NCBI RefSeq assembly: GCF_006345805.1
Contig: NW_021833079.1
Location: 1-64,000, forward strand
DNA length: 64,000 bases
Direction of reading: 5' to 3'
From: Octopus sinensis
Lineage: Eukaryota
The notes beneath the pieces were generated by a model. It saw only the letters and a list, made by a program, of their open reading frames with translations. It did no database searches and was not told the DNA's origin. Shown piece after piece: positions 18 to 59,800 of this stretch. Positions within the stretch are counted from its first letter, which is position 1, and every line of letters begins with the position of its first letter. Both the position numbers and the translations under genes were made by a program.

Positions 18-1295
18 TCAAGTATTCATATAATCATATATTCGATCGTAATAATCCTCCTTGATTGAACGCCCCGCCATATTCACATCCACTCCAATTT
101 TCTCAGTACGTCTTGGTACATTTAAAAGCTGTGCCACATTCTTCAAAAAATCAGGATTACATGAAATATCCAAATTATCGAACAAATCAATGCTCTCACT
201 GAGCCACATGATATTCTGAGTCGCAGTAGGAGACGAATTTCCATCAATATAAAGAGAAAATAAAGAATTGAGTTGAAAACAAGCAAATTTTGCCTTTGTC
301 CCGTCCACGAGAATACATTGAGTGACCATTGGGTAAGGAATGTCCAGTCCCTCAAAAGGAAAAAAATTCATGTAATGAGCAGAACTCAGTGCCTGAGCAA
401 AATTAAGTAAAAGTCCGCGGTGTCCCCAATTTCCGTTTACGTGGTGAAGTGCAAGAAGAGGTGCCATAAATGGATCCCCAATTCTAAACCCAGGCAAAAT
501 TTCGGGGATTATTGATTTTCTACATATTCCATATCTTCCTGGGGGGATGGACAACGTGGGGAAAATAGATTCTTTGCATAAATCGTCATTGATTTGAAGA
601 TTTGGGAATATTTCTCGCCTCGATCTGATTTGGCGGTGACATATTTCGTCGATGTAAAACCGACAGAGTCCAGAATTCCGTCTTCCAGAACAATTTCCGC
701 TGACTGGACGAGTAAAATGGGTTCTAATATCAACTGAGTCGTCAAATTGCCACAAATCGTCAAATTTTGAATTTTTTATTGCACATCCGGTAAAATAGTC
801 AAATATAGCTCTAAAAATTACGGCAGAAAGGTCAATTGCAGAAGGAAGACTTCTAAGAGACTTTACATTATAAAAATTCATGAGGAATTCTAATTTTGAA
901 TTTACGGAATTATTCAAATTGGTCAACTCATTTGTGGAAATATCAACGGAGGTGACGTTTGTCGGAAGACCTTTAACAATGTGAGTTCTTGTCAGATTTT
1001 GGAGAACTTCCAAACTGTATTTTTGATGGGATTTTGCATTAAGAATCCAAAAAACTTGTTTTTCATTTCCAGAATAATATTTTAAACGCTTTTCAAGATT
1101 TGGCCTATTTTTTAAATTTTTTCCAAATCTGTGCAAATTCCAAGCTTCGTAATCGGGGAGTTGACCCCATTCACCTGCATTAAAAATAAAGTTATTACCT
1201 GGTGGAAAGCGTAGTACAACTGGCGGATACAGAGATTGAACCTCTGTAATCAAAGAACAAAATGTTCTTTTATAAAACTTGCACATGAAAAACAT
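18..1295 (-). CDS. MRPS30: Mitochondrial ribosomal protein mL65/S30 (PDCD9 family), apparently intronless
   Basis: 425-aa ORF; C-terminal segment PYPMVTQCILVDGTKAKFACFQLNSL...NIMW resembles the MRPS30 family; start may be the second or third Met. Confidence 0.75.
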   Translation of the reverse strand: MFFMCKFYKRTFCSLITEVQSLYPPVVLRFPPGNNFIFNAGEWGQLPDYEAWNLHRFGKNLKNRPNLEKRLKYYSGNEKQVFWILNAKSHQKYSLEVLQNLTRTHIVKGLPTNVTSVDISTNELTNLNNSVNSKLEFLMNFYNVKSLRSLPSAIDLSAVIFRAIFDYFTGCAIKNSKFDDLWQFDDSVDIRTHFTRPVSGNCSGRRNSGLCRFYIDEICHRQIRSRREIFPNLQINDDLCKESIFPTLSIPPGRYGICRKSIIPEILPGFRIGDPFMAPLLALHHVNGNWGHRGLLLNFAQALSSAHYMNFFPFEGLDIPYPMVTQCILVDGTKAKFACFQLNSLFSLYIDGNSSPTATQNIMWLSESIDLFDNLDISCNPDFLKNVAQLLNVPRRTEKIGVDVNMAGRSIKEDYYDRIYDYMNT

Positions 1296-7584: not shown

Positions 7585-8132
7585 ATGTCTGATCTTACCG
7601 TTTACGAATTAGAAAAAATCGTTGCTAAGGGAGTAAGCACTGACGGGGAAACCATTTATTGTGTAAAATGGAAAAATTTTGACGAGTAAGTTCTACTTTT
7701 AATTCTTAGTGATCAAAATACTTGGGAACCTGCCGCTAACTTAAGTAAACATTCTATAACGTTGTTCAACAAATCAAATAAAAAAAAGAGATCAAAGAGA
7801 CCAAGATTGACTACTACAAAATCGCATGCCAAAAAAAGAAAAACAACATCTAGCCAAGAGTCTGTTTCTGATATGTCTTTGCCGACTAATCACGATGCCG
7901 ATACTCAGACATCGATTTTATATAAAGGAAATATAATTGAAAATGTTATTGGAGCCAGGAAAACTGAGGAAGGATTAGATTATCTTATTAAATGGCATTT
8001 TTTATGCTTATTTGTAGGAAGGATAATTCAGAACCAGAGTTCGTCTCGTCGTTGGTTGCTAGAGATTTGTGGCCTAATGAAATTTTTGATTTTATGCTCC
8101 AACATATCTCATGGGCTGAAGATTCCGAATAA
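7585..8132 (+). CDS. HP1: HP1-like chromo + chromoshadow protein; introns 24 nt (GT-AG) and 23 nt (GC-AG, 7995-8017)
   Basis: YELEKIVAK...YCVKWKNFDDDQNTWEP chromodomain; basic hinge; IENVIGA...YLIKWKDNSEPEFV...WPNEIFDFMLQHISW chromoshadow domain. Confidence 0.85.
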
Positions 8133-19252: not shown

Positions 19253-19621
19253 TTGGTATCCATAGAAAATATTTTATTAATTTTTTTTATAAATAACCAT
19301 TAATGATATTAAATTAATTAAGATCGATTAATTGAAGGGAAGCCCAGCAGCCTGGCGGATTGCCAAACTGTTTCCCCGGATAACGGCGATCGAGAACCGT
19401 TGCAATAACTAGTTTTAAATAATATTTATTAAAAAAAATTCAATTGTGTAATTCTAACTTATCAAATTGTTATCCCTGAAAATGTAATGACAGAGTTGAT
19501 AAAATTATTTTATATTAAATGTTTTCATAAAATATTGTTTTAAATAATATTAACATTATATTAAAAATTTATTTTTTACCTGAGAATTTATTAGATATTT
19601 ATATTTTAAATCTGCGGTTGT

Positions 19622-20969
19622 ATGAATAATATTGGTAAATATTTAACTCTGGGGGTCGCTTCTACTCTAGCATTCAGTTTATATCCAATTAAACACAATC
19701 CTACTAATTCTGAATCAACGAATGAAAAAATTTCTACAAAGTTAATCAATCGCGACTCTTACTCTGACATAATTTCAAAGTCCAAAGATTACTTACAATA
19801 TACTAAAGTCGTAAAATGTTGATTCTCTAGTTTTTTAGTTAAAATATGGACTTCCTTGTATAGCTATTTCCGTTTCCGTGAATGGTTCTATTGTTTGGGC
19901 AGAAGGTATTTTTATTTTTGAAGTGAGCAATTAGGGCTAGGATACTCTGATATCGAAAACCTAGTCGAGTGTAAACCAGAAACAGTTTTTAGAATTGGGA
20001 GCATCAGTAAACCCTTGACTGCTGCAATTGTCGGGAAATTAATACAGGAAGGACTTTTATCTTTAGACGATCCTATTTCGAAGTACAATATTGACTGGCC
20101 CGCTAAATTCATTGACGGAAATGAAGTAAAATATGTTCAAATTATATAACTGTGTTCTATTACGTGTCGACACCTCATGTCGCACTCGAGTGGAATCCGC
20201 CACTACAATAATCCAACTTCTGAAATTGACGAATTTCACATCAAACAGTGTTACAAGGACGTGAAAAGTGCACTTACCCTATTTAAGGATGATCCTTTAC
20301 TTTTTATTCCAGGTTGATTTTGAAATGATTTTGGTCCTGTATAGGAACGAGAACCCATTACAGTACTTTTGCTTGGACATTGGTATCAGGGATATGTGAG
20401 TCTGTAACAAAAAAATCGTTTCCATCACTTCTTAGAGAACTTTTTGATTCTCTTTCAATGAACGACACTTTTCTCGATAAAAACGACACAATAATTTTCC
20501 ACAGAACTCGGTTGTAATTGAAATTAGTACTATTACATATAGATATTACAAATTTAATTCTTGTAATGAAATCGTGAACTCACCATACGCTGAATCGACT
20601 CATAAATATGCGGGAGGTGGAATTTTGTCATCAGTTTTGGACATAAACGTGTTTGCCAATGCTATGCTGGAGAGTTATGAAGCTAATTCAAATAGTTATC
20701 TATCTGCTACCATTGTTTCTGAACTGTGGTCCCCACATTATAAATCAAAGAAAGACTATTTTGGACTTGGATGGTTTATTTCTGATCATCCACGTGCCCC
20801 AAAGTATATTTACCACACAGGATGTTCAGTTGGAGGCAGTTCTGTGGTACTAATACAACCTACGGATAAAAATTCACAAATTCGTGGAGTTGTATGTATA
20901 ATGACTAACGTTGATGGAATCAATTTACTTAGCAGTGCAAAAAGAATTGCTTCTGACTTTTTTAAATGA
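19622..20969 (+). CDS. LACTB: Serine beta-lactamase-like protein LACTB; 5 introns, one requiring a GT-TG junction (20126-20152)
   Basis: RIGSISKPLT (SxxK), HLMSHSSGIRHY, LFKDDPL, HYSTFAW, YAGGGILSSV, YHTG. Confidence 0.9.
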
Positions 20970-22255: not shown

Positions 22256-23150
22256 CAGTGGTTCTCAAGAATTTTGAGCCAGGGGCCGCAAAAATCAAAT
22301 TTTTTATTTATAGGGGCCGCACATTTCTTTGTCAACTTAATGAAGATAAGATATTTGTTATTTCAGGTTGAACTGAAGAAAATACATATGATTTTTGTTT
22401 TACTGTATACATGGAATTTAGAGTTGCGTCCTATCGCCGCGCATTTGTTATATCAATGAATGAAAGAATTTATAAACTACTTTGTCATATTTTCAAAATC
22501 TGGTACGATATTAGATGTCGAAATCCGCAACATCTGATCTAGATGGATATCCGTGAGTTCATTGTGGTATTATTTCCTAATTTTAGTATCGTTACTTAGA
22601 GGTAACTTGTGTGCAATATCGAAAACAGCGGGCGAACAACATTCCGATGCAAATATTTCGATTGCCGTTTTATATAATTCGCCATCAGAATAAGGCTTCA
22701 TATTTTTAGCCAATAGGTAACTAATTTTGTATGATGCCAGGTTAATATTAGACGAATATGTCCCACTTTTGAAAGTGGATGATCGCTTTAAATAATCTTC
22801 TTTCATTTGTTTTAGTTTTTTCGTCCGAGAAACACCAGTGAATTTTTCATAAAGAATAGAGTGGGAACGGTAGTGCCGTTCGATTGTATACGTTTTTAAA
22901 GTTACAATAATAGAATTGCATATTAGGCAAAAAGCCTTTCCATTGACCTCAATAATGAAATATTTTTCTTCCCAGATGAGTTTAGAAATCCTATTTTCCT
23001 TGGGAATTTTTCGAAAACGTTTAGAATTCGACATCACAACAACAAATAAAAAAACCTGACAAAAAATAAAATATTTATAGAAACATAAACCCCTCAATTA
23101 AATCCTAGGGGCCAGGAAATCTTTCAGGAATAGGTTGAATAGGGCCCTTT
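22256..23150 (-). mobile_element. hAT (Charlie/Buster, GTF2IRD2-like) internal-deletion derivative
   Basis: Terminus cagtggttctcaa at 22256; transposase N-terminus (CLIC...RHY, LAKNMKPYSDGE, LPLSNDT) joined to C-terminus (LTDIHLDQMLRISTSNIVPDF). Confidence 0.8.
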
Positions 23151-25852: not shown

Positions 25853-27500
25853 CAGTCCGACCTCTAAATGGGGCACTAAGTGCCTCAAATCAGAGGTTTC
25901 CCCAAAAAAGAGGTTTTTCAAAAAGCTCAATAAATAAAGAAAAAAAACATTATTTTTTAAAATAATCAGTTAATTTTTCTCCATATTTATATTTATTTTT
26001 AATTCCTAATGACACTTTCTTTCTGAATTCATAAAAATCATGAAGAAAATCTGGAATCAAATCAAAGATGTTTGTCTCTAAGTTTTCCATCAAACTTAAA
26101 ATTTGTGATATTGATGGTTCGCAGCTTATATTCTCATAGATATTGGATCATTATCTTCTATTTCATCAAAACATTCATCAATAACATTATTAAATATTTC
26201 TTCAGATGATTCATTTATGCAACTCGAGTCTGATGGAGATTGTCGAAAAACCTTTTGCCAGCAGTTATAAATAATATCCGCAGATACATTATTCCAAGCA
26301 TCTGAGATTATTGTTACCACTTGCCGCAAATTTAATTTGTATAAAAAATCAATTAGACAATTCAAATAATTATCCTTGAAATTTTTAATGATTCCAGCAT
26401 CCAATGGTTGAAGTATTGGTGTCGTATTTTTTGGTAAAAATAAAAAATCAACGTTGCTAAATGTCGATATTTTGTGGCAAGCAGCGTTATCTAATAACAT
26501 TAAGATTTTTCTTTTTTGAATAATCATTTTTTCATTAATTTTTTTGAGCCAGGATATAAAAATGTCTCTTGTCATCCACGCATTTTTGGACGAAGAGTAT
26601 AAAATTCCATAAATTTCGGGAGAAAATTTTTTGAAACATCTAGGATTTCTATATTTTCCGATTATTAATGGTTCAAATTTTTCTCCAGTGTAACTACAGC
26701 ATAGATGAAGAGTAACTTTATCTTTACTCCTTTTAAAGCCCCGTGCCGAATCACCAGTTTTCACGAATGATTTACGTGGGGTAAGTTTGATAAAAAGAGA
26801 AGTTTCGTCACAATTAAAAATGTTCTCCTTTCCATATTGTTCAACTTTGATATTTAATTCTGATAAAAAATTCAAAATTATCGCATGATCAGCAGATGCG
26901 GATTCGCCTGACAATGTTCGGAATTTTAATTCATGCCTCTGCTTGAATTTTCTAACCATCCATTTGAAGCTTTAAACTTGTTTAAGCCCATTCTCGAAAA
27001 AACAGTTAGGGAAATTTTTTTTAAAAGAGTTCCAGAAACTGGAACATTCTGATCCCTTAGACGCTGAAAAATATCAAGGACTTTTTCATCAAATCCGTTT
27101 TTATTTTCACTTAATGATGAGGAAAGAAATCCTTTTTTGATAAATGGAAGAATATTCTTTTTTATACGAAAAATAGTTCCCTTGCTAGTATTGTACATTA
27201 TGGATAATCTCCTCTCAGAATGTTCTTTCTTTAAAAGATGATCAGCAATCTTCAACTTGGTTTCATAATTCAAAGGCATTACACAAGAAATTTAAAATGA
27301 AACGTGTCTTAAAATATTTATTTTTTAAATTGGTATAATTAATTTTATTTAATAAAAAATCAATGACCCAAATAGGAATGTTAAAATTAATTGATTTTTG
27401 ATAATTTGGTTAAAAAAATTTATAATGCCCCAAAACAGAGTTTTCCCCAAAAAAGAGGTGCCCCACCCCTGGAGGTGCGCCCCAATTAGAGGTCGGATTG
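25853..27500 (-). mobile_element. pogo/Tigger transposon, 1648 bp; transposase broken by a 1-nt deletion near 26950
   Basis: TIR cagtccgacctctaaatggggc / (rc) caatccgacctctaattggggc; TA on both flanks; CENP-B HTH plus FNCDET, LLDNAACH, QPLDAGII. Confidence 0.95.
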
Positions 27501-27594: not shown

Positions 27595-29281
27595 CTAAAA
27601 TTGCGCTTTCCAATTTTTGAAAGCGACAGATGCAGCAACTGCAGCTCCTTTTCCACTCCCGTCCGTAGATAAGCATGTTTTAAACTAAAATTAAATTGAT
27701 TTAAGTATCGAATATTTGTATATAAGAAAATATTTAGTTAAACTATTAATAACCTTTTTATTAGTTAATTGAGACAGTGCTAACTCCATAGTTTTTGAGA
27801 AATACTCATGAAAGCGGTAAAGCGATCCATCTACACCAATAATAACAAAATCAGAGTCCGCACGTTCAATAAGTACAGCAAGACCTTAATATTTCTTATA
27901 GACCACAACTTACCACAGGCAACCAATCTAGCCGCTCTCTCACTGACAACTTGACAAACAAATTTGAGTAGAGTCAGATACGGCAGACATGGGTCAGTGA
28001 CCCCAAACTCACAGAAAACCTTACGTGCGTTTGACATATCTTCATCAGGGTCACTTTTTTAATATCATTACGACAATACTTTACTATTTCTGAAACATAC
28101 TTGGTAATAAAAGACTGAGCCTCGTCTATTTTTGATGAAAAGTTACAGGAAATGCATCCCTCTTGTCTCAATTTGAGTAAAATCTGTCGGACCATCTCTC
28201 CCATATAGAAACCAGAAATCATTTTCTCGTATCTTTGTATTGAAATATAAAAAACACATTTGTTGTCCTCTATTTACTGAATTTGAGTCAATGAGCCTGT
28301 CAAACTCACTCAATACAAAATCTAATTCTCCATTTACTCCAAAAGCTCCCCATTCCGTGTTTATTATCATCTAATATATTGTTAATACTACCAATACCAT
28401 GTCGGTATTTTTAATTTCAGATCTATCAGCCATTTCAACGTTTTCTAGTTTTTCTATATATGAAGCATTAGTCCCCGTTCCTAGAAATTCCGAAAAAACA
28501 AAAACCAATGATAAGTCCGATTCTTGTTTCGGGATTTTCCAAGGCACATGCGAGTAATGTTCCCACTGTATCATTGACTACAGCAAAACATTTAACATTC
28601 AGATCCTAAAATATGTTTTAAAATTAGAAAACCCTTTTTTCGATAGAACAATGGAGTAGTTCGACCACATTCTGACCGACCACACCTTCGCAATTAAAAT
28701 CCTTGGTCCATCTTATTAAAACAGCGTTATTGAGTCCAGACTGTTTGCAAGGAAAAGAAAAAGTAAATCCCAACGGAATTGGAGAATTATTTGACTTTTT
28801 GCTGACGTCAATGCCATTAACAGTGAAGAAACTTTCCATACATGTTGCTATGTGGTCAAAAAGCTAAGAAAATGATAATATCTCAATTCTCACAGTGTCC
28901 GCAGTTCCATATCTGGCAGAATAAGGAATTTCAAAGACTTGGTTGAGCATTTTAACTTCTGTGCCGTTCAAATCTATTAACAAAACACGAAAGTTCGTCC
29001 CCCCTAAATCAAGAGCGACAAATTTTCCAAGTTCTACAAAATAGTGTTTTTTAAAAAAACCATTTGTAGGTAGATTTGTTACATATGATGGAAACATTTT
29101 TATTGAAGCAGTCATGTTTGTTTTTGATGAAAGTCCAGCTTCCATTGCCATTTCCATGCCATCTCGAACTTGAACGTATTGTTCATGAGTTAGGCATAGT
29201 GGTTTGACCACATCGTTTATCTGAATACTAACACACCCTTACTTTGGAAATGATTTCTTTTGAGAATAATTGAGCATCCAT
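27595..29281 (-). CDS. HK: Hexokinase (single domain); 10 introns (22-30 nt and one of 69 nt)
   Basis: [89 protein letters not shown]. Confidence 0.95.
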
Positions 29282-43686: not shown

Positions 43687-44864
43687 ATGCTAAGATTTCT
43701 TCATATATTTCATAAAGTCAGATTATCAAGAAATATAAGACCGATTCCAATAGAACATGTGCATTTGAATTATGAAAACCAAAAAATACATGATCCAGAA
43801 ATTCGTGCGTTTTTGCACCAAATAAATAAAAACAACAATTATTCAATTCCAAATCATATTCCAATAACTTATAGTGGTACAAATGATATAAAAATACTGA
43901 CAAAAATACTATTAAAATTAGGTAAATCTCGATTAACAAGTATTTTTACTATTATTCATATTTTGGCCTCGTCGTCCTGACCCAAATGGTTGGATATCTT
44001 GTGGCCTGTGACGCCATCAATTTATCAACACTTGCGCTTACATCCCTGGGTACCTTTCTCACATCTTCTTCTGCTGCTTCGCTAAACCAAGTAATATTCC
44101 TAGAAAATAGCCCGTCATTTAGCTCTTGGAAATACCTTTTGACTCTCAAATGAATCGAACTAAGGACAGAGTTCTTGTTCAGTCTAATATTTCGTATTTT
44201 TTGGTCATTTCTAGAACATTTAGACCAGAGGGGACGCTAGCATTTGCTCTGGCGACTGGAATTAGTGGAATTGTTATTCTCTCAACTCTTGTTAGTTCGG
44301 CGACTGCTATGTTGGCTTTTGGAAATCTAATTCTTTATTCATTCATATATACGCCGATGAAGAGATACAGTGTGGCTAATACATTTGTTGGCTCATTCGT
44401 GGGAGCAATTCCTCCAATAATTGGATGGCATGCTGCTACAGGGAGTTTTGATTCTGGTTTAGACTTTTGGGGTGATTTTAGGTTGCTTTGTGCTTGGGGC
44501 AATTTTATACTTTTGGCAACTTCCTCATTTTAATTCTCTGAGTTGGAATTATAAGGAAGATTATTCTTTGGGTGGGTATAGACTGATGTCTTTTCTGTAT
44601 CCCGATAAGTGCAGGGCCACATCTTTGAGGCACAGTTGCTATTTGGCAATTACATGTCTTGTTGCACCGATTATGGCTTGTGGTAATGCCTATTTTTCTG
44701 TTTTGAGCTGCCCTTTGAATGTTTATTTAATTTATTTGTCTCATCGGTTTTATAAAAATCCAACTCGGGGGACTTCAAGAAAACTATTTTTCTTTTCGTT
44801 GGGTCATTTGCCGTTATTATTGTTGGTTCTTACGCTAACAAAATACATTCATTTTGGGATGTAG
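43687..44864 (+). CDS. COX10: Protoheme IX farnesyltransferase (heme O synthase); 4 introns, the first requiring GT-TG (43940-43965)
   Basis: KSRLT|SLVVLT, SAASLNQ, FDSQMNRTKDRVL, YTPMKR, VGAIPPIIGW, WQLPHFNSL, YSLGGYRLM, RKLFFFSL. Confidence 0.92.
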
Positions 44865-49369: not shown

Positions 49370-51400
49370 CAGCGGTTCTCAACCTGGGGTCGAAAATCAG
49401 CCCAGATCAATCGTAATGGGGTCGAAAATAAATTTAATAATTTTTTCATTTTAAATTAAGTTAGTTTATTTTTAAAGTGGTAAACCTTTGTTTTTTAAAG
49501 TTTTTAAAATTACAATGCTAGTATTTGTTCTTGTATGAATCGTCCGTCTACATTAAAAAATCGTCAATATAAAAATGAATTTTTGGCATTTGGATTTATA
49601 AAAAATTCCTTTGATAATAGACCATACTGCTTACTGTGTAATAAGTCATTATCAAATGATGAAATGAAACCGTCCAAATTGTTTAATTATCTTAGGAGAA
49701 AACATTCGGATAAAAAAGATAGACCATTTGAGTACTTTGTATTCTCTTTGCAAACAAAAAACGATTGACACTGTTTTTACAAATATTAATGAAAGAAACA
49801 ATTGTTATTATTTAAAATTATATATAGGAAGACTAATTGCATCCTATAAAATTGCAATGATTATTGCCAAAAATGAGAGTTCCCACGTTTTTGGTGAAAA
49901 TCTCATCAAACCATTTATATCAGTGATTCTATTAGATCTGATGGGTTTAAATCCTGACGAAATTTTAAAATCTGTTGAAACTAATACTACTGGATTTTCT
50001 ATTTTTTCTGTAGTCAAATTATTTTTGGATGAGAAAAAGATTCCATATGAAAATTTGGTTGCTTGCTCCACCGATGGTGCAATGTTTATGGTTGGGAAGT
50101 ATAAAGGATTTGCAGCATATTTGAAAAATTGTCCTAATGTGATTCATATACATTGCGTTCTACATAGATACCATTTGATTTCAAAAGCTCTTTCACCAAT
50201 TCTACATGAAACGTTAAATATAGTTATAAAACCATCAACAAAATTAAAGTAAACAGCATGTATGATTGTCTTTATAGAAAATTTTGCTATGAGGATAAAG
50301 AAACATTATGTCCGTCTTGTGCCTCACACTGAGGTTATAGTTTCCAATTTTATAGGTGCGATGGTTATCAGATAAAAATGCATTAGAACGATTTTTAATA
50401 TTATTTGACACAATCGTGAATTTTCTAGCTTCTAAGGGTAACAAAAATGTAGCAGATTTAATTGTATCGAAAAGGAAAGAAATTGTTTATTTGACGTGGA
50501 TTTTTGGAAAATTTAATGAAATTTCATTAAAACTTCAGGGAAAGTATGTGACTTTAATAGATTGTAAAAGAATTATTCAAATATTTGTCGAAAAAATAAA
50601 GTTATATAAATATAACTTGAAAAAGAAATTATTATAATATTCCCGAATTCCAATCAATTTTTCAAACATTTGATGATGAAGATATTAACTTTTTGCAACA
50701 TTTATTCAGTATAGAAAAGATTTGATTCCACGATTCCAAAATATTCTTGAATTATAAATTCCATTCTGGATGATTAATCCTTTTTTGTCGAAGCCAGAAG
50801 AAAAAGAAAATATTCAAGAGAAATTAATCACTTAAAATTCAATCCAGAATTAAAACTATATTATGATGATCCACAAACGTCAATTATTTTTTCCAAAATA
50901 TCAAAGTGAAAGAGACTTATCCAAAATTGTGGAACGAAATAGCACAATTGCTACTCTATTTTCCAACATCATACTGTGTTGAATGTGGATTTACCATTCT
51001 ACATCGAATTGTAAATAAAGAAAGAAACAGGTTGGATGTGTCCATTGGAGGATATATTCGTTTAAAAATAACATAAATAGAGTCAGATATCGAATCTTTG
51101 GTCAAAAAACATCAGTCACGAGGGTTCCATTGGTATTTAATTTTTATTTATTATAGATTTATGCTAAAATTCTGACTTAACATCGAGTTTTTTCATTGAG
51201 TTTTGTTTGATTTGATTATTAATAATGAATTCATTTTAGATAGTTAGTTAACTAATTTTACTTAGTATTGTCTGTTGTATATAAAAATATCACTTAACAT
51301 TGTCTGTTGAATATAAAAATATTATCTAATATTGTCTGTTGTATACAAAAATATTATTTAATATTGTCTGTTGATGATGTTTAGAATTAATAAAATAAAT
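49370..51400 (+). mobile_element. hAT/Buster (ZBED5/SCAND3-like) transposon; transposase degraded, right end not found
   Basis: Terminus cagcggttctcaacctggggtc after gtttagac (nnnTAnnn); YCLLC...MKPSKL, STDGA, HCVLHR, EVRWLS, FPTSYCVECGF. Confidence 0.88.
51267..51375. repeat. About 32-bp tandem repeat (attgtctgttg.atataaaaatat), about 3.4 copies, probably subterminal repeats of the hAT element
   Basis: attgtctgttg occurs four times at about 32-nt spacing. Confidence 0.8.
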
Positions 51401-52037: not shown

Positions 52038-52654
52038 TTAAAGAACAGAACAACAATGATTGCGTTTATCAGACTTTTCGATACGTTTATTTGCCCTGAT
52101 TAACCTCACAAGTTCAATAAATGCCTAAATCACATTCAACAAGCCAGATCAACCCTATCGACATTCTGAGCTGTTTTTGCTGAAGTTTCAAAAACAGGAA
52201 CATTGAGAGTATCTGGAATCTTCCATGATGATTTAAGGTCACATTTATTCCCGACTATAACAACTGGCATAGTTTTAGGACTGTGATATTGCTGGATTCG
52301 GGAGTAAAGAGATTGAGCCCATTCAAAGGTCTGTGGTTCTGCCAATGAGTAGACCAGTAGAAATCCATCTCCCTTCCTCATGTACATCTCATAGACACTA
52401 TAAAATTGTTCGGTCCCGGCAGTGTCGAGGATCTCGAGGCAGCATTCTCGATTGTCAATTACTATAATAGATTTATTTAAATATAATTATTTACTTTTTT
52501 TCCTGCAATAAGAATCTTCTATTGTCGGGTCGTATTTATGAACAAATATTTCTTGTGTAAATCGAATGGTCTGTAAAAGTTTAAACATAATTACGACCAG
52601 TGCACTTTTCCCAACACCTCCACTTCCCATGACCACAATATTATGCTCTTCCAT
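52038..52654 (-). CDS. RAP: Rap-subfamily small GTPase; 3 introns (27, 33, 29 nt)
   Basis: [27 protein letters not shown] (Thr61, Rap signature), GNKCDL, ETSAK, C-terminal CCSVL CAAX box. Confidence 0.88.
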
Positions 52655-55282: not shown

Positions 55283-58200
55283 CTAAGTTTCTTTCTTTTT
55301 GATGTTGTGGACACACTTATTTGGTGATAAATCTTTTTTATTTTTTTTCCAGTACAAGAGTCTTTTCCCAAGGTTCAACTTTGTTTTTATAAGAAACAAG
55401 CATGCTCTCAAGGGTTTTTTTATAGTAAGTAATTGAATGTATGCATGTATTCTCTTACTGATATTAAGCAAACGTGCATATTGTAGAAATTTTTGGATTG
55501 AGTCCATCCCATTTTAGCACAATTGACGGAGCCGACCCCGAGTGAGTGGCAGGCACCGAAAGCGAAGAACCTGAGGAAGAAGGCAATGCCGACACTTCCA
55601 TCTCCACTTGATGCGTCGGATATCTTGCCAACTCCAGCCGAGCCAATACAGAAAAAGCCCCCTTTACGAAAACGGGCGGCGCTCAGGCACGAGGGCAGCC
55701 GCGTTCCAAATCAAGTGTGAGCGTGATAACGCTTATCAATGCCCGGTCTCTCATGAGACGGGCAACGGAGCTGAGGTCCCTTCTGACCTTGGCAAAGACA
55801 GATGTCCTAATTGTGAACGAAACCAAAATGAAAGGGCCTCGGCAGATCAAATTTGAAGGCTATAGATCCCTCCACATTCCATGGAGGTCGGGGGCGATTG
55901 CGGGAACGGGATCCTCGCTTTACTACAAAGCCGACATTGTTGTAAAGAACTTGAGGATCCTTGAAGAGAACCGATGCGAACTGATCGCACTAGAACTCCT
56001 AACTTCCATTGGATGGATAACAATCGGTGGAATGTACTCGAAGGACCTCAGAACTACCCTGAAGTGATCAGGAAGTTCTTTGAGGATAATGAGATGGCCA
56101 TTCTTGCGGGAGATCTCAACGCCAAAAATACCGCTTATGGATGCGAGACCTCTAACCAAGATGGTCGGGCTTTACTGAGGATCGCAAGGAAATATGACCT
56201 TAATGTCTGGACTTCTGAGGAACTTAATCATTTCTGCTTCAGTGGAGGTGATCGCCTCGGACTATTTCTTTCTTCCGCGTCTGTGAGCCTTTTTGCGACA
56301 GGCCCCGGATAGAAATGCGGACTGGGAGTGACCATCTGCCCCAATCAATGTTGTTGCGGAACATCTACGGAGTTGGTATCAGATCTCTTCACGGGATACG
56401 ACTTGTCCCCTGTGCAATGGCCCATGTTCGCCATATTCATGGGTGCAGCTTTGGAACCTCTCTCCCACATGCATCTGTCCACGAGTGAAAGTATTGATCA
56501 TCTTGATATGGCCATACGAAAGCATGTGGTGGCCTTTCTGGACAGATTCGCTTCTAAAAAACATATGAAATCCCAGGGATCTTGCGCGAAGAGGTCCGAA
56601 ACTAGACTATCTGAGCTAGTCAGAGACAAGGCGCGACTGGAAAGCAAAAGAAGGAGGTGTTTTGAATCGGAGGACTCTGGAAGTCTAAAGGCCCGAATCA
56701 ACACCCTGAAGAGTCGGATCGACGAGCTGACTAAAGCTAACACAGATGAGGCATGGAAGAGAGAATGCTTAAAACTCAACAAGAAAAATCCTAAATTCTG
56801 GAAACTATACAAAATAATGAACGGGACGGAAGCGAAAGGAGAAGAAATCATTCTTAAATCGGTGGATGGAGGCTTTGTTCCTACTGAGGAAGTCCCGGAG
56901 GTCTTCCGCCAGCAGCTAGCAGGGATTCAGGAGGTGGACCCTTCGTCTATCCTGCCTCTGAAAATATTCGAGGAGTCGACCCGAAATTCCCGCTCAAAAC
57001 TTGTTTTGGATGGACCCTTGTGCAGAGAAATAACCACGGAAGAGACGTTCGAAGCAATCAGAGGTTGCAAGAACAACGCTCCTGGATTTGACTTCATCCC
57101 TATGGAGGTATTCAAGAAGGCACCCGGATGCTTGCTTCGTATTCTGGTGAAACTATTCAATGCCAGTTGGGACAATGGTCACGTCCCACCTAGCTGGAAC
57201 GAACAATCGTCCGAATGATCCCAAAACCTGGAAAACCAAATACGCAGGCAGGAAGTTATAGGCCAATTAGCCTTATCTGCACAACGTCGAGGATAATGGA
57301 AAGAATTATTTTCAATCGTTTATCGGCTTACGTGGAACAAAATAATATACTCGCGGAGGAACAGTGGGGTTTTAGACCTGGTCGATCAACCGGTCACTGT
57401 TTCTCGCTTCTTGAGGAAGAACTGACTCGGGCCAAACAACATAAAGCCTGCCTAACGGCGGTCTGCCTGGACGTCTGCAAGGCCTTTGACAGTGTCTGGC
57501 ACTTGGGGTTGTTAGATAAAGTAGCGGAGTTGGGTGCTGGGCGAAAAACTGTCGGATGGCTTAAGGACTTCTTGTGCGAGAGAAAATCGTTCATTCGTTG
57601 TGGAAATTTGCTATCGAAGGCCGTGAATCTGAGGAGAGGTGTTCCTCAGGGATCGGTTCTCAGCCCCTTGCTCTTTAATATATTTCTGGCCGACGTCCCG
57701 AAACCACATTTTCCTACGAGCAGACTAATTATCTACGCAGACGATATCTTGGTTACGGATGTCTCGACGTGGGGACCCCGACACAGAAGAAGGCTGTCCT
57801 GGAGCAGACTAGAACCGTACTTGGAGGAACTTGAAATCTGGTGCAATGGTAAGGCTTGAATCTCGCTCTGGACAAAAGTACCATTTGTTGGATTTCAATG
57901 GGTCGTGACAAAAAACCGACTTTCGAGGATTATGGGAACCTGATTATATCGAAGAACCTACGTTACCTGGAGTAACTATAGACCCCACCGGGTCATACAA
58001 ACCCCATGTGCATGCAAAGCGGAAACAAGGAGCGAAAATCCTAAAAGGACTGAGGCGTTTTTGTCTGAGCGCAGAAACGTTTCTACACATCTACCAGACT
58101 TGTGTTCAGCCACTAATAATCTATGGCTCGGAGGGCTAGTACCAAACTGATGAAAGGGACCTTCTAATCGCCAAACTCGAAAAAACCAGACGATTTGCCA

Positions 58201-58700
58201 TCAAACTGGCATTCGGCCTGGAGCTCAGCAGTCCGCTGGAAGACCTGCATGAGCGGAGTGTTGACACGATTGACGCGATCCTGGCAAAAACTCGAACTCG
58301 CTGAGGGAGATAAGACAGTCTCCTGGGGCAAAACCGAAGTTGAGACCTTCGTGGCTCTCGTTATCAAGCCCCCTAAGCTCTAATTCCTCGGCCACTTTTC
58401 TTTTGGACCTATTGTAATAAATAAACCATATTCATACTATTTTTACTCTTTCATGATAACTTATTCTTGCTCTTTCGATAAAACATCATATTTTTTCATT
58501 TTTTCAATCTCCACTTTCTTTAAATTTTGGGAAGATTTTATCTCAGCTTCAACGGAAAAAATTTGATTTCTTATTTGTATAAAACAAACAAATCGGGTTT
58601 GTTATGTTCCAAGACGAAGTCATTCTTTATAAATATGATTTCAACCTTCTCATTCGTCAATACAGATTCTACCAAATGAGTATTGAGTTTCTTGTCATTC
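55283..58700 (-). mobile_element. Second RLE-element copy, split by the plus-strand LINE (pieces 58420-58700 and 55283-55520)
   Basis: THLVESVLTNEKVEI...HNKPDLFVL...EKMKKYDVL...RVKIV resumes as IVLKWDGL...NISKRIHAYIQ on the far side of the LINE. Confidence 0.6.
55523..58420 (+). mobile_element. APE + RT LINE (Jockey/CR1/I-type), several frameshifts, taataaataaa tail
   Basis: ITLINARSL, VNETK, ILAGDLNAK; PKPGK...SYRPISL, EQWGFRPGRST, LDVCKAFDSVWH, GVPQGSVLSPLLFN, YADD. Confidence 0.9.
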
Positions 58701-59074
58701 CTGAGTAAAAAATCTGGTCCAGTAAATAAAATGAAAAAATTTGGCACTCACCGAAAGTTTTTTATTAATTAAAACTGATTCGTCAAGTGGATTGTGCTTC
58801 AAGTATTTTTCAATAGTGACCAGATGGGTTTTTCCAGCATTTCTTCCTAACGAATCGAGAAGCTTCTGTTGCAAACACTATTTCGGTTTTTTAAGTCCAC
58901 AAGGAATCCAAAAAGCATACTTTCACTTCGAAAGGAAATTGAAGTCAATCCTCTTCTAAAATTGTTAAGGGAGAGGTACAATCTCTGTTTGTTTGCCGGT
59001 CGCATATGTATCTTGTATTTCATTAATTTTCTCCGGATTGTATCGTCAACTATAATTAAAGACAAATTTTTTTG

Positions 59075-59800
59075 CCGTCGATCTTCAGCTGACTTGGAAC
59101 CACTCCTCGACCAACACAGATTGCCCTGTTTCCGTTCTTCCTGTCAGCCATACTCAGACTCCTGGCTTAATGTACTCCCTCCTTCGCCTTTGTATACTGT
59201 TCTCGATAGGGATTCACTCCGTTTGGGTATCTGCAATCGCCTTGAACTCCCTGTCTGCAGACCTCACCCCTGTCGTTGTGGGGATAAAGTTGACGCCTTT
59301 GGGCTACATCCTCTGTCTTGTCGAATGAGTGCCGGCCGATTTCCTCGGCACCCTGAAATTAACAATCTAATTCACAAAGCTCTGGAAAGAGCTGGTTTCC
59401 TTTCAATTCTGCAACCGACAGGTTTCGACCTTGAAGATGCAAAATGTCCCGACGGTCATACGCTTTTCGCTTTTGAATCCGGGAAGCAGCTTGTTTGGGA
59501 CGTTACCTGTGCCGAATCTTTTGCCAAGGAAGCCTTGAATTCCACTGCTTGTAGACCTGGCTCGTCAGCCGACAAGGCCGAATCCAGGAAACTGACTAAA
59601 TACGAGGATTTGTGCGATCTCTTTTGCTTTCGGCAATTGCCGTTGAGACTTCCTGTGTTTTCGGGGCAAAGAAACTTGGCCGTCTGTGCACCCATCGCTT
59701 CAGAGATCCCAGTGAATTTATATTCCTTATTCAGAGGATCTTGCTGGATGTTTTACGCGGGAATTGTCTCTCAATCCCGCGAGCCGGTACTTAATAACTA
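59075..59800 (+). mobile_element. CRE-like retrotransposon 3' fragment with CCHC knuckle and RLE domain
   Basis: CRCG..VDAFGLHPLSC...GRFPRH..IN, PDG.T...WDVT, KLTKYEDL, QRILLDVLRGN. Confidence 0.85.

Follow-up and report, generated by a model that had tools for sequence, protein, structure and literature searches.

A predicted 27-nt intron in a LACTB-like gene that ends in CTG, one base from a canonical acceptor

TG acceptors and ultra-short introns

The use of TG as a 3' splice site has been verified in 36 human genes, where such acceptors act as alternative sites only and are invariably paired with an AG no more than 28 nt away (PMC2374985). At some of these sites TG is the dominant choice, with a usage of 0.99 in PCGF2 and 0.85 in CACNA1A, and human mutations that convert an AG acceptor to TG activate other AGs, not the TG (PMC2374985). 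A first-pass annotation of the locus described here had characterised TG acceptors as rare and usually alternative sites, which agrees with this literature (PMC2374985).

Ultra-short introns have been described in dicyemids and myxobolid myxozoans, with median lengths of 22–27 nt (PMC13644364, PMC6543705, PMC6736024), and AG is the only conserved 3' signal in Dicyema japonicum and in non-myxobolid myxozoans (PMC13644364). The D. japonicum assembly drew on pooled animals whose heterozygosity was 1.24%; Illumina and PacBio RS II assemblies were merged for it and then haplo-merged (PMC6736024). Acceptors may also be made on the RNA, as in ADAR2 pre-mRNA, and the editing of GT-AA to GT-AG is a known route (mentioned in PMC7072748).

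In this paper we discuss a 27-nt intron of a LACTB-like gene in a 64,000-nt stretch of DNA, the whole of which was analysed and is referred to below as the window. Like the human TG–AG tandem sites of GNAS, PCGF2 and CACNA1A (PMC2374985), this intron has a GT donor, a terminal TG and a pyrimidine at −3 and looks otherwise ordinary; unlike them, with their AG partner at 28 nt or less, it has its nearest AG 38 nt downstream, where the frame is lost. The tandem sites prefer a pyrimidine at −3 and a purine at +1, and here the C at −3 fits this preference whereas the T at +1 does not. A second likeness is to AG>TG acceptor mutations, known as disease alleles and loss-of-function polymorphisms, which also present a single change at −2 in a conserved intron of an otherwise intact gene and have the same predicted outcome, namely retention or cryptic AG use with a premature stop, although in the LACTB case the variant state sits in a reference assembly. 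In its length, its GTA/GTT type of donor, its A+T richness and a position conserved with other animals the intron resembles the ultra-short introns of dicyemids and myxobolids, from which it departs in having no AG, the one conserved 3' signal of that class. GC-AG introns, one of which occurs in the window at 7995–8017, likewise depart from GT-AG, but they are a well-established functional class that alters the donor and retains the AG, whereas the LACTB intron loses it.

Architecture of the LACTB-like gene

The gene occupies 19622–20969 on the forward strand and was modelled with six exons, which encode 400 codons after removal of the 27 nt and end in TGA. Its product matches the Pfam Beta-lactamase domain (PF00144, E = 4.7e-50), and its top matches in the PDB are the human LACTB structures 7v21, 7ulw and 7v1y (E ~1e-65). 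The motifs SISK, YST and HTG are all present, so that the protein combines a beta-lactamase/PBP fold carrying SxxK, Y-x-[NT] and H/K-T-G with LACTB as its closest solved structure and with the 16-residue spacer of animal-type members, as discussed below.

Exon 1 (19622–19810) begins with ATG and encodes a hydrophobic N-terminus, and is separated by intron 1 (19811–19838) from exon 2 (19839–19905), which aligns with human LACTB. Intron 2 (19906–19934) is in phase 1 and matches a vertebrate LACTB intron in both position and phase (between SEG and LGY). Exon 3 (19935–20125), also placed by alignment to human LACTB, carries the catalytic SISK at 20000–20011 and ends in WPAKFIDGNE. It is followed by intron 3 (20126–20152), the feature of interest, and by exon 4 (20153–20312), which starts CSITCRHLMSHSSGIRHY and contains the SHSSGIRHY motif at 20180–20206. 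Intron 4 (20313–20344, phase 1) lies at a position shared with vertebrate LACTB, after KPG; exon 5 (20345–20513) contains YST at 20359–20367; intron 5 (20514–20542) is at most one codon away from a vertebrate intron position; and exon 6 (20543–20969) contains HTG at 20814–20822 and the TGA stop at 20967–20969. The four introns other than intron 3 are all of the GT..TAG type and measure 28, 29, 32 and 29 nt in order.

Upstream of the gene, at 19335–19400 on the forward strand, the very A+T-rich intergenic DNA contains a G+C-rich island of about 65 nt (ggaagcccagcagcctggcggattgcc...gagaaccgttgc). A search of this island against Rfam gave no match, even at E ≤ 1, and no Rfam match was found in the window as a whole.

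The third intron and its boundaries

Intron 3 has the sequence gtaaaatatgttcaaattatataactg, is in phase 0, and is in frame with both flanking exons. It opens with the donor GTAAAA, contains an in-frame TAA at 20147–20149 and finishes in aaCTG, with a T at 20151, the −2 position of the acceptor, where an A would give a canonical CAG. The donor is of a common local type (53 of 62 tallied introns begin GTA or GTT), and A and T make up 81% of the intron, compared with 60% of the flanking exons and 73% of the 62 tallied introns. In length and composition it belongs with the ultra-short U2-type class (27 nt, against a local range of 22–69 nt with a median of 28); in place of the terminal AG of that class it has CTG.

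There is no AG anywhere in 20127–20188. Between 20100 and 20215 on the forward strand the dinucleotide occurs just twice, at 20125–20126, where it overlaps the donor, and at 20189–20190, inside exon 4, this second one being the first AG 3' of the donor. An AG-free run of 62 nt has a probability of about 0.05 in this window, which is mildly unusual and on its own carries no information. If the intron is retained the reading frame continues as DGNEVKYVQII and ends at the TAA, and if the 65 nt from 20126 to 20190 are removed the frame shifts, CSITCRHLMSHS is deleted and the product ends as DGNEWNPPLQ before a stop. The predicted transcript junctions are GGAAATGAA joined to TGTTCTATT for use of the TG and GGAAATGAA joined to TGGAATCC for the 65-nt excision. 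The first-pass annotation had given the same interval, length, in-frame TAA and absence of AG, and had noted that the next AG shifts the frame and removes a conserved motif, all of which is borne out by the sequence.

Context scores at the 3' side do not by themselves separate ends at 24, 27 and 30 nt, and the boundaries were examined by comparison with relatives. When the 27 nt are removed the junction aligns without gaps to human LACTB (7v21), as wpakfidgnecsitcrhlmshssgirhy against fpekeyegekvsvttrllishlsgirhy. A gapless vertebrate alignment had also been claimed in the first-pass annotation; the alignment holds, while the W that was given there for the vertebrate protein is an F in human. 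A census was then made of the spacer, defined as the residues between the [FWY]P.K motif and H.SGIRHY, by searching 1.84 billion representative proteins exhaustively with HMMER and taking the best 60 matches, 52 of them scorable. The spacer is exactly 16 residues long in 45 of these 52 closest relatives and 11–13 residues long in the bacterial-type ones. Removal of 27 nt yields a 16-residue spacer in the window gene (FIDGNECSITCRHLMS), and spacers of 15 or 17 residues, as would follow from excision of 30 or 24 nt, were found in none of the 52. None of the relatives has an insertion at the site of intron 3.

The position of the intron is also shared with vertebrates. A vertebrate LACTB locus (NCBI GCA_963921235.1) carries a GT..AG intron of 12.6 kb, in phase 0, between FPEKEYEGEK and VTITV, with the boundaries GAGAAA/GTAAGA and CAATAG/GTAACG, and this intron falls between K193 and V194. 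Intron 3 of the window gene lies between E149 and C150, also in phase 0, which is the same codon boundary. Because a vertebrate intron occupies the same boundary and phase, the spacer is kept and the alignment is gapless, the intron can be regarded as old and conserved. We take the 27-nt boundaries to be correct on three independent grounds, the gapless alignment, the spacer length and the orthologous intron position, and the first-pass reading of the stretch as an intron with these ends is upheld by the latter two. Ends at 24 nt (GT..AA) and 30 nt (GT..GT) are ruled out by the spacer census together with the orthologous position, and among the in-frame ends only the 27-nt one combines a terminal G with the conserved 16-residue spacing. 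The comparisons thus identify 20126–20152 as what we consider a genuine and evolutionarily old spliceosomal intron of a LACTB orthologue, with CTG as its putative acceptor, one base removed from CAG by an A>T change at 20151.

No protein, transcript or contig from the same species was found in protein searches, in an exact-protein look-up or in a scan of metagenome contigs for the junction with a gap of 0–30 nt.

Canonical and non-standard alternatives

A dynamic-programming splicer limited to canonical introns crosses the region solely by way of two spurious introns, 20083–20126 and 20166–20190, and this path deletes the segments WPAKFIDGNE and CRHLMSHSSG, in which some residues are identical in all 26 of the 26 homologues aligned. 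No canonical GT-AG solution retains the conserved sequence. A ciliate-type code in which TAA specifies glutamine was likewise rejected, as TAA and TAG end other genes: TAA terminates the annexin, PKN-like, HP1-like and Ras/Rap-like models, TAG terminates the COX10-like model, and TGA also terminates models in the window. No in-frame stop was found in the seven gene models checked (~3,060 codons). A third candidate, an AT-AC or U12 intron of 30 nt at 20121–20150, starts ATGAAG, has no ATATCC donor and leaves a 15-residue spacer that is absent from relatives; the U12 branch site (TCCTTAAC, 10–15 nt from the 3' end) is missing, and a TATAAC instead sits at the very 3' end. RNA structure around the acceptor was not significant (fold z = −0.9).

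Introns and genes across the window

Gene models were built with our own splicer and checked against Pfam and the PDB, giving 12 genes including LACTB, most with near-full coverage of their Pfam domains. They comprise a PKN-like kinase (Pkinase 1–263 of 263), a hexokinase with both domains almost full length, a serine palmitoyltransferase-like aminotransferase, a COX10-like UbiA prenyltransferase (haem O synthase; 43929–44864, forward strand), an annexin whose best matches are spiralian, a LIN54/tesmin-like protein, an F-box/LRR protein, an HP1/CBX-like protein, a Ras/Rap-like GTPase, an SMG9-like protein with no Pfam match and an intronless MRPS30/PDCD9-like ORF (18–1295, reverse strand). Since the last of these and the COX10-like gene are present, mitochondrial translation and haem A synthesis are retained. 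This makes the myxozoan Henneguya salminicola (median intron 27 nt, 29% G+C) an unlikely source, as that species has no mitochondrial genome. The other candidates among animals with a median intron of ~27 nt are dicyemids (PMC6543705, PMC6736024), and with the spiralian matches of the annexin a dicyemid is the most likely source. The ~4,500 modelled codons of the 12 genes contain no frameshift and no premature stop, so that local base accuracy looks high.

The window contains 67 modelled introns, of which 65 are GT-AG (22–69 nt, median 28), one is GC-AG and one is the GT-TG intron of LACTB. The latter is the sole intron with a non-AG acceptor; the other 66 all end in AG and so follow the AG rule. 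With non-canonical ends permitted at a penalty of 7 bits, a search chose such an intron inside a conserved gene only in LACTB. Among the 62 tallied introns the acceptor is TAG in 42, CAG in 10 (16%), AAG in nine and GAG in one. The commonest lengths are 29 nt (11 introns), 28 nt (nine), 25 and 26 nt (eight each) and 27 nt (seven), and 27 nt, which had been called the modal length, is within the main length class while the mode is 29 and the median 28. Internal AGs are skipped in 37 of the 65 introns, commonly within about 20–24 nt of the 5' end and, in introns of 40 nt or less, as far as 31 nt from it. Use of the first AG thus does not suffice to explain the 3' site, and a constraint from minimum length or the branch point is suggested.

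Several other introns deserve mention in their own right. The GC-AG intron at 7995–8017 (forward strand, 23 nt, gcattttttatgcttatttgtag) is in the HP1/CBX-like gene and is supported by homology, no GT donor being available; its product, GLDYLIKW/KDNSEPEF at the junction, aligns without gaps to the chromoshadow domain of human CBX5 (PDB 8uxq). A GT-AG intron of 24 nt in the Ras/Rap-like GTPase gene (52571–52594, reverse strand) has a length divisible by three and reads through without a stop (VIMFKLLQ), and its retention would escape an ORF scan; the gene finder read through it. The last intron of the hexokinase gene (27685–27753, reverse strand) is, at 69 nt, the longest in the window, and is also a multiple of three, with in-frame stops.

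For such a compact gene structure the window is rich in repeats. A LINE-like element at ~55500–59800 (forward strand) has an RVT_1 domain, fragmented ORFs and a G+C content of 41–47%, against 33% for the window, and its nearest proteins are just 30–40% identical. There is in addition a pogo/Tigger-type DDE_1 transposase ORF with two ORFs that look transposase-derived, one of which has a weak match to a Spin-doc zinc finger; these three lie at 26126–26959 (reverse strand), 22570–23097 (reverse strand) and 49728–50252 (forward strand).

Possible explanations for the CTG acceptor

A one-base lesion of the acceptor, functional splicing at TG and an assembly error all predict identical DNA. Our preference, to which we give a probability of roughly 0.4 and which rests on priors, is that the sequenced DNA truly carries a one-base lesion at the CTG acceptor, either a variant or a young null allele. 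The host, an animal whose introns are ultra-short, is most likely a dicyemid, and in it the acceptor would have changed from CAG to CTG through A>T at 20151. The lesion may be a segregating variant that was caught in a haploid reference, or it may be a very recent loss-of-function or hypomorphic mutation. CTG would not be a signal that the spliceosome is built for, and most transcripts of this copy would be expected to retain the intron, with the stop after DGNEVKYVQII, or to splice to the AG at 20190, with the WNPPLQ ending, while joining at the TG would occur in a minority of transcripts at best. Both the nature of the lesion and these transcript outcomes are what we infer. They agree with the AG rule kept by the other introns of the window, with AG being the conserved 3' signal in D. 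japonicum (PMC13644364), and with the human AG>TG mutants, which use other AGs (PMC2374985), the nearest here lying out of frame and 38 nt beyond the TG. Capture of a rare allele is also plausible if D. japonicum is the source, given pooled animals, 1.24% heterozygosity and haplo-merging (PMC6736024), although the source organism, and hence the assembly history, is itself something we infer. The rest of the gene counts against a lesion, as it is flawless through 400 codons, the SISK, YST and HTG motifs and four good introns, and any inactivation must for this reason be very recent or allelic. Productive use of TG is moreover chemically possible, as the values of 0.99 and 0.85 for PCGF2 and CACNA1A show.

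That last point leads to a reading which we hold to be rather unlikely, in which the TG is a functional sole acceptor. Intron 3 would then be a constitutive GT-TG intron, with GAA joined to TGT efficiently enough to supply LACTB, and its 3' end would be determined chiefly by how far it lies from the branch point or the 5' end, with the terminal G kept. An otherwise intact gene with all its catalytic motifs speaks for this, and the 27-nt end is unique among in-frame ends in having both a terminal G and the 16-residue spacing. The C at −3 is shared with 16% of local acceptors, the skipping of internal AGs in 37 of 65 introns points to a length or branch constraint, and TG use does reach 0.85–0.99 at some human sites (PMC2374985). 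Against this, a sole TG acceptor has no known precedent and in human AG>TG mutants the TG is not used (PMC2374985), there is no AG partner within 28 nt, the case is one among 67 introns in the window, and in D. japonicum no 3' signal other than AG is conserved (PMC13644364). The first-pass annotation had gone further in seeing the TG as apparently obligatory. Neither its use nor an obligatory role finds support; three readings predict the same DNA, and the published behaviour of AG>TG changes argues against sole use of the TG. The stronger form of the proposal we regard as slightly more doubtful still: in an animal with introns reduced to about 27 nt, the 3' site would be fixed by geometry, through the terminal G and the spacing from the branch point or 5' end, the −2 adenine would be dispensable, and the intron would be the first in a conserved protein-coding gene to be spliced constitutively as GT-TG with no other acceptor.

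An error in the assembly or consensus, with CAG as the true DNA at 20150–20152 and an ordinary GT-AG intron, is in our view improbable. A lone T>A at 20151 would restore an acceptor of the type found in 10 of 62 local introns, and both candidate sources leave room for error: the D. japonicum assembly, if that is the source, merged Illumina and PacBio RS II assemblies (PMC6736024), and that of Henneguya, the alternative candidate, was assembled from PacBio reads with Racon-only polishing. The clean ~4,500 codons of the 12 genes speak against an error, however, as does the fact that long-read errors are mainly indels and not A/T substitutions.

All other readings together take up a very small share of the probability. 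Creation of the acceptor on the RNA, with a 24-nt intron ending in AA (20148–20149) and A-to-I editing so that AI is read as AG, would follow the GT-AA to GT-AG route mentioned in PMC7072748, and the 24-nt end does have the favoured T at −3 and was the end picked by an ORF-based search; we nevertheless think it highly improbable, because removal of 24 nt gives the 17-residue spacer seen in 0 of 52 scored relatives and lies off the conserved intron position, and no significant structure surrounds the site (z = −0.9). That the stretch is not this intron at all, and is instead a coding insertion of nine residues with the TAA read as sense or read through, or the 30-nt AT-AC intron, is scarcely credible and is refuted as far as sequence alone allows. 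The stretch does have a length divisible by three and stays in frame, and ATGAAG...ATAAC can be drawn as AT..AC, but all three stop codons terminate models and none occurs in frame in the seven checked, relatives have no insertion here while orthologues carry an intron at the site, the A+T content is far from that of the exons, and the AT-AC version has neither the U12 donor nor the right spacer.

Conclusions

The locus is a lead, not a discovery. Should the CTG stem from a variant or from an error, it would amount to an ordinary splice-site lesion and be relevant only to annotation, since gene predictors restricted to GT-AG will fail on this LACTB gene or model it wrongly. Were the TG really the sole acceptor, it would break a rule kept even by the TG sites known so far, all of which are accompanied by a partner AG, and it would offer a natural test case for how the 3' end is defined in minimal introns.
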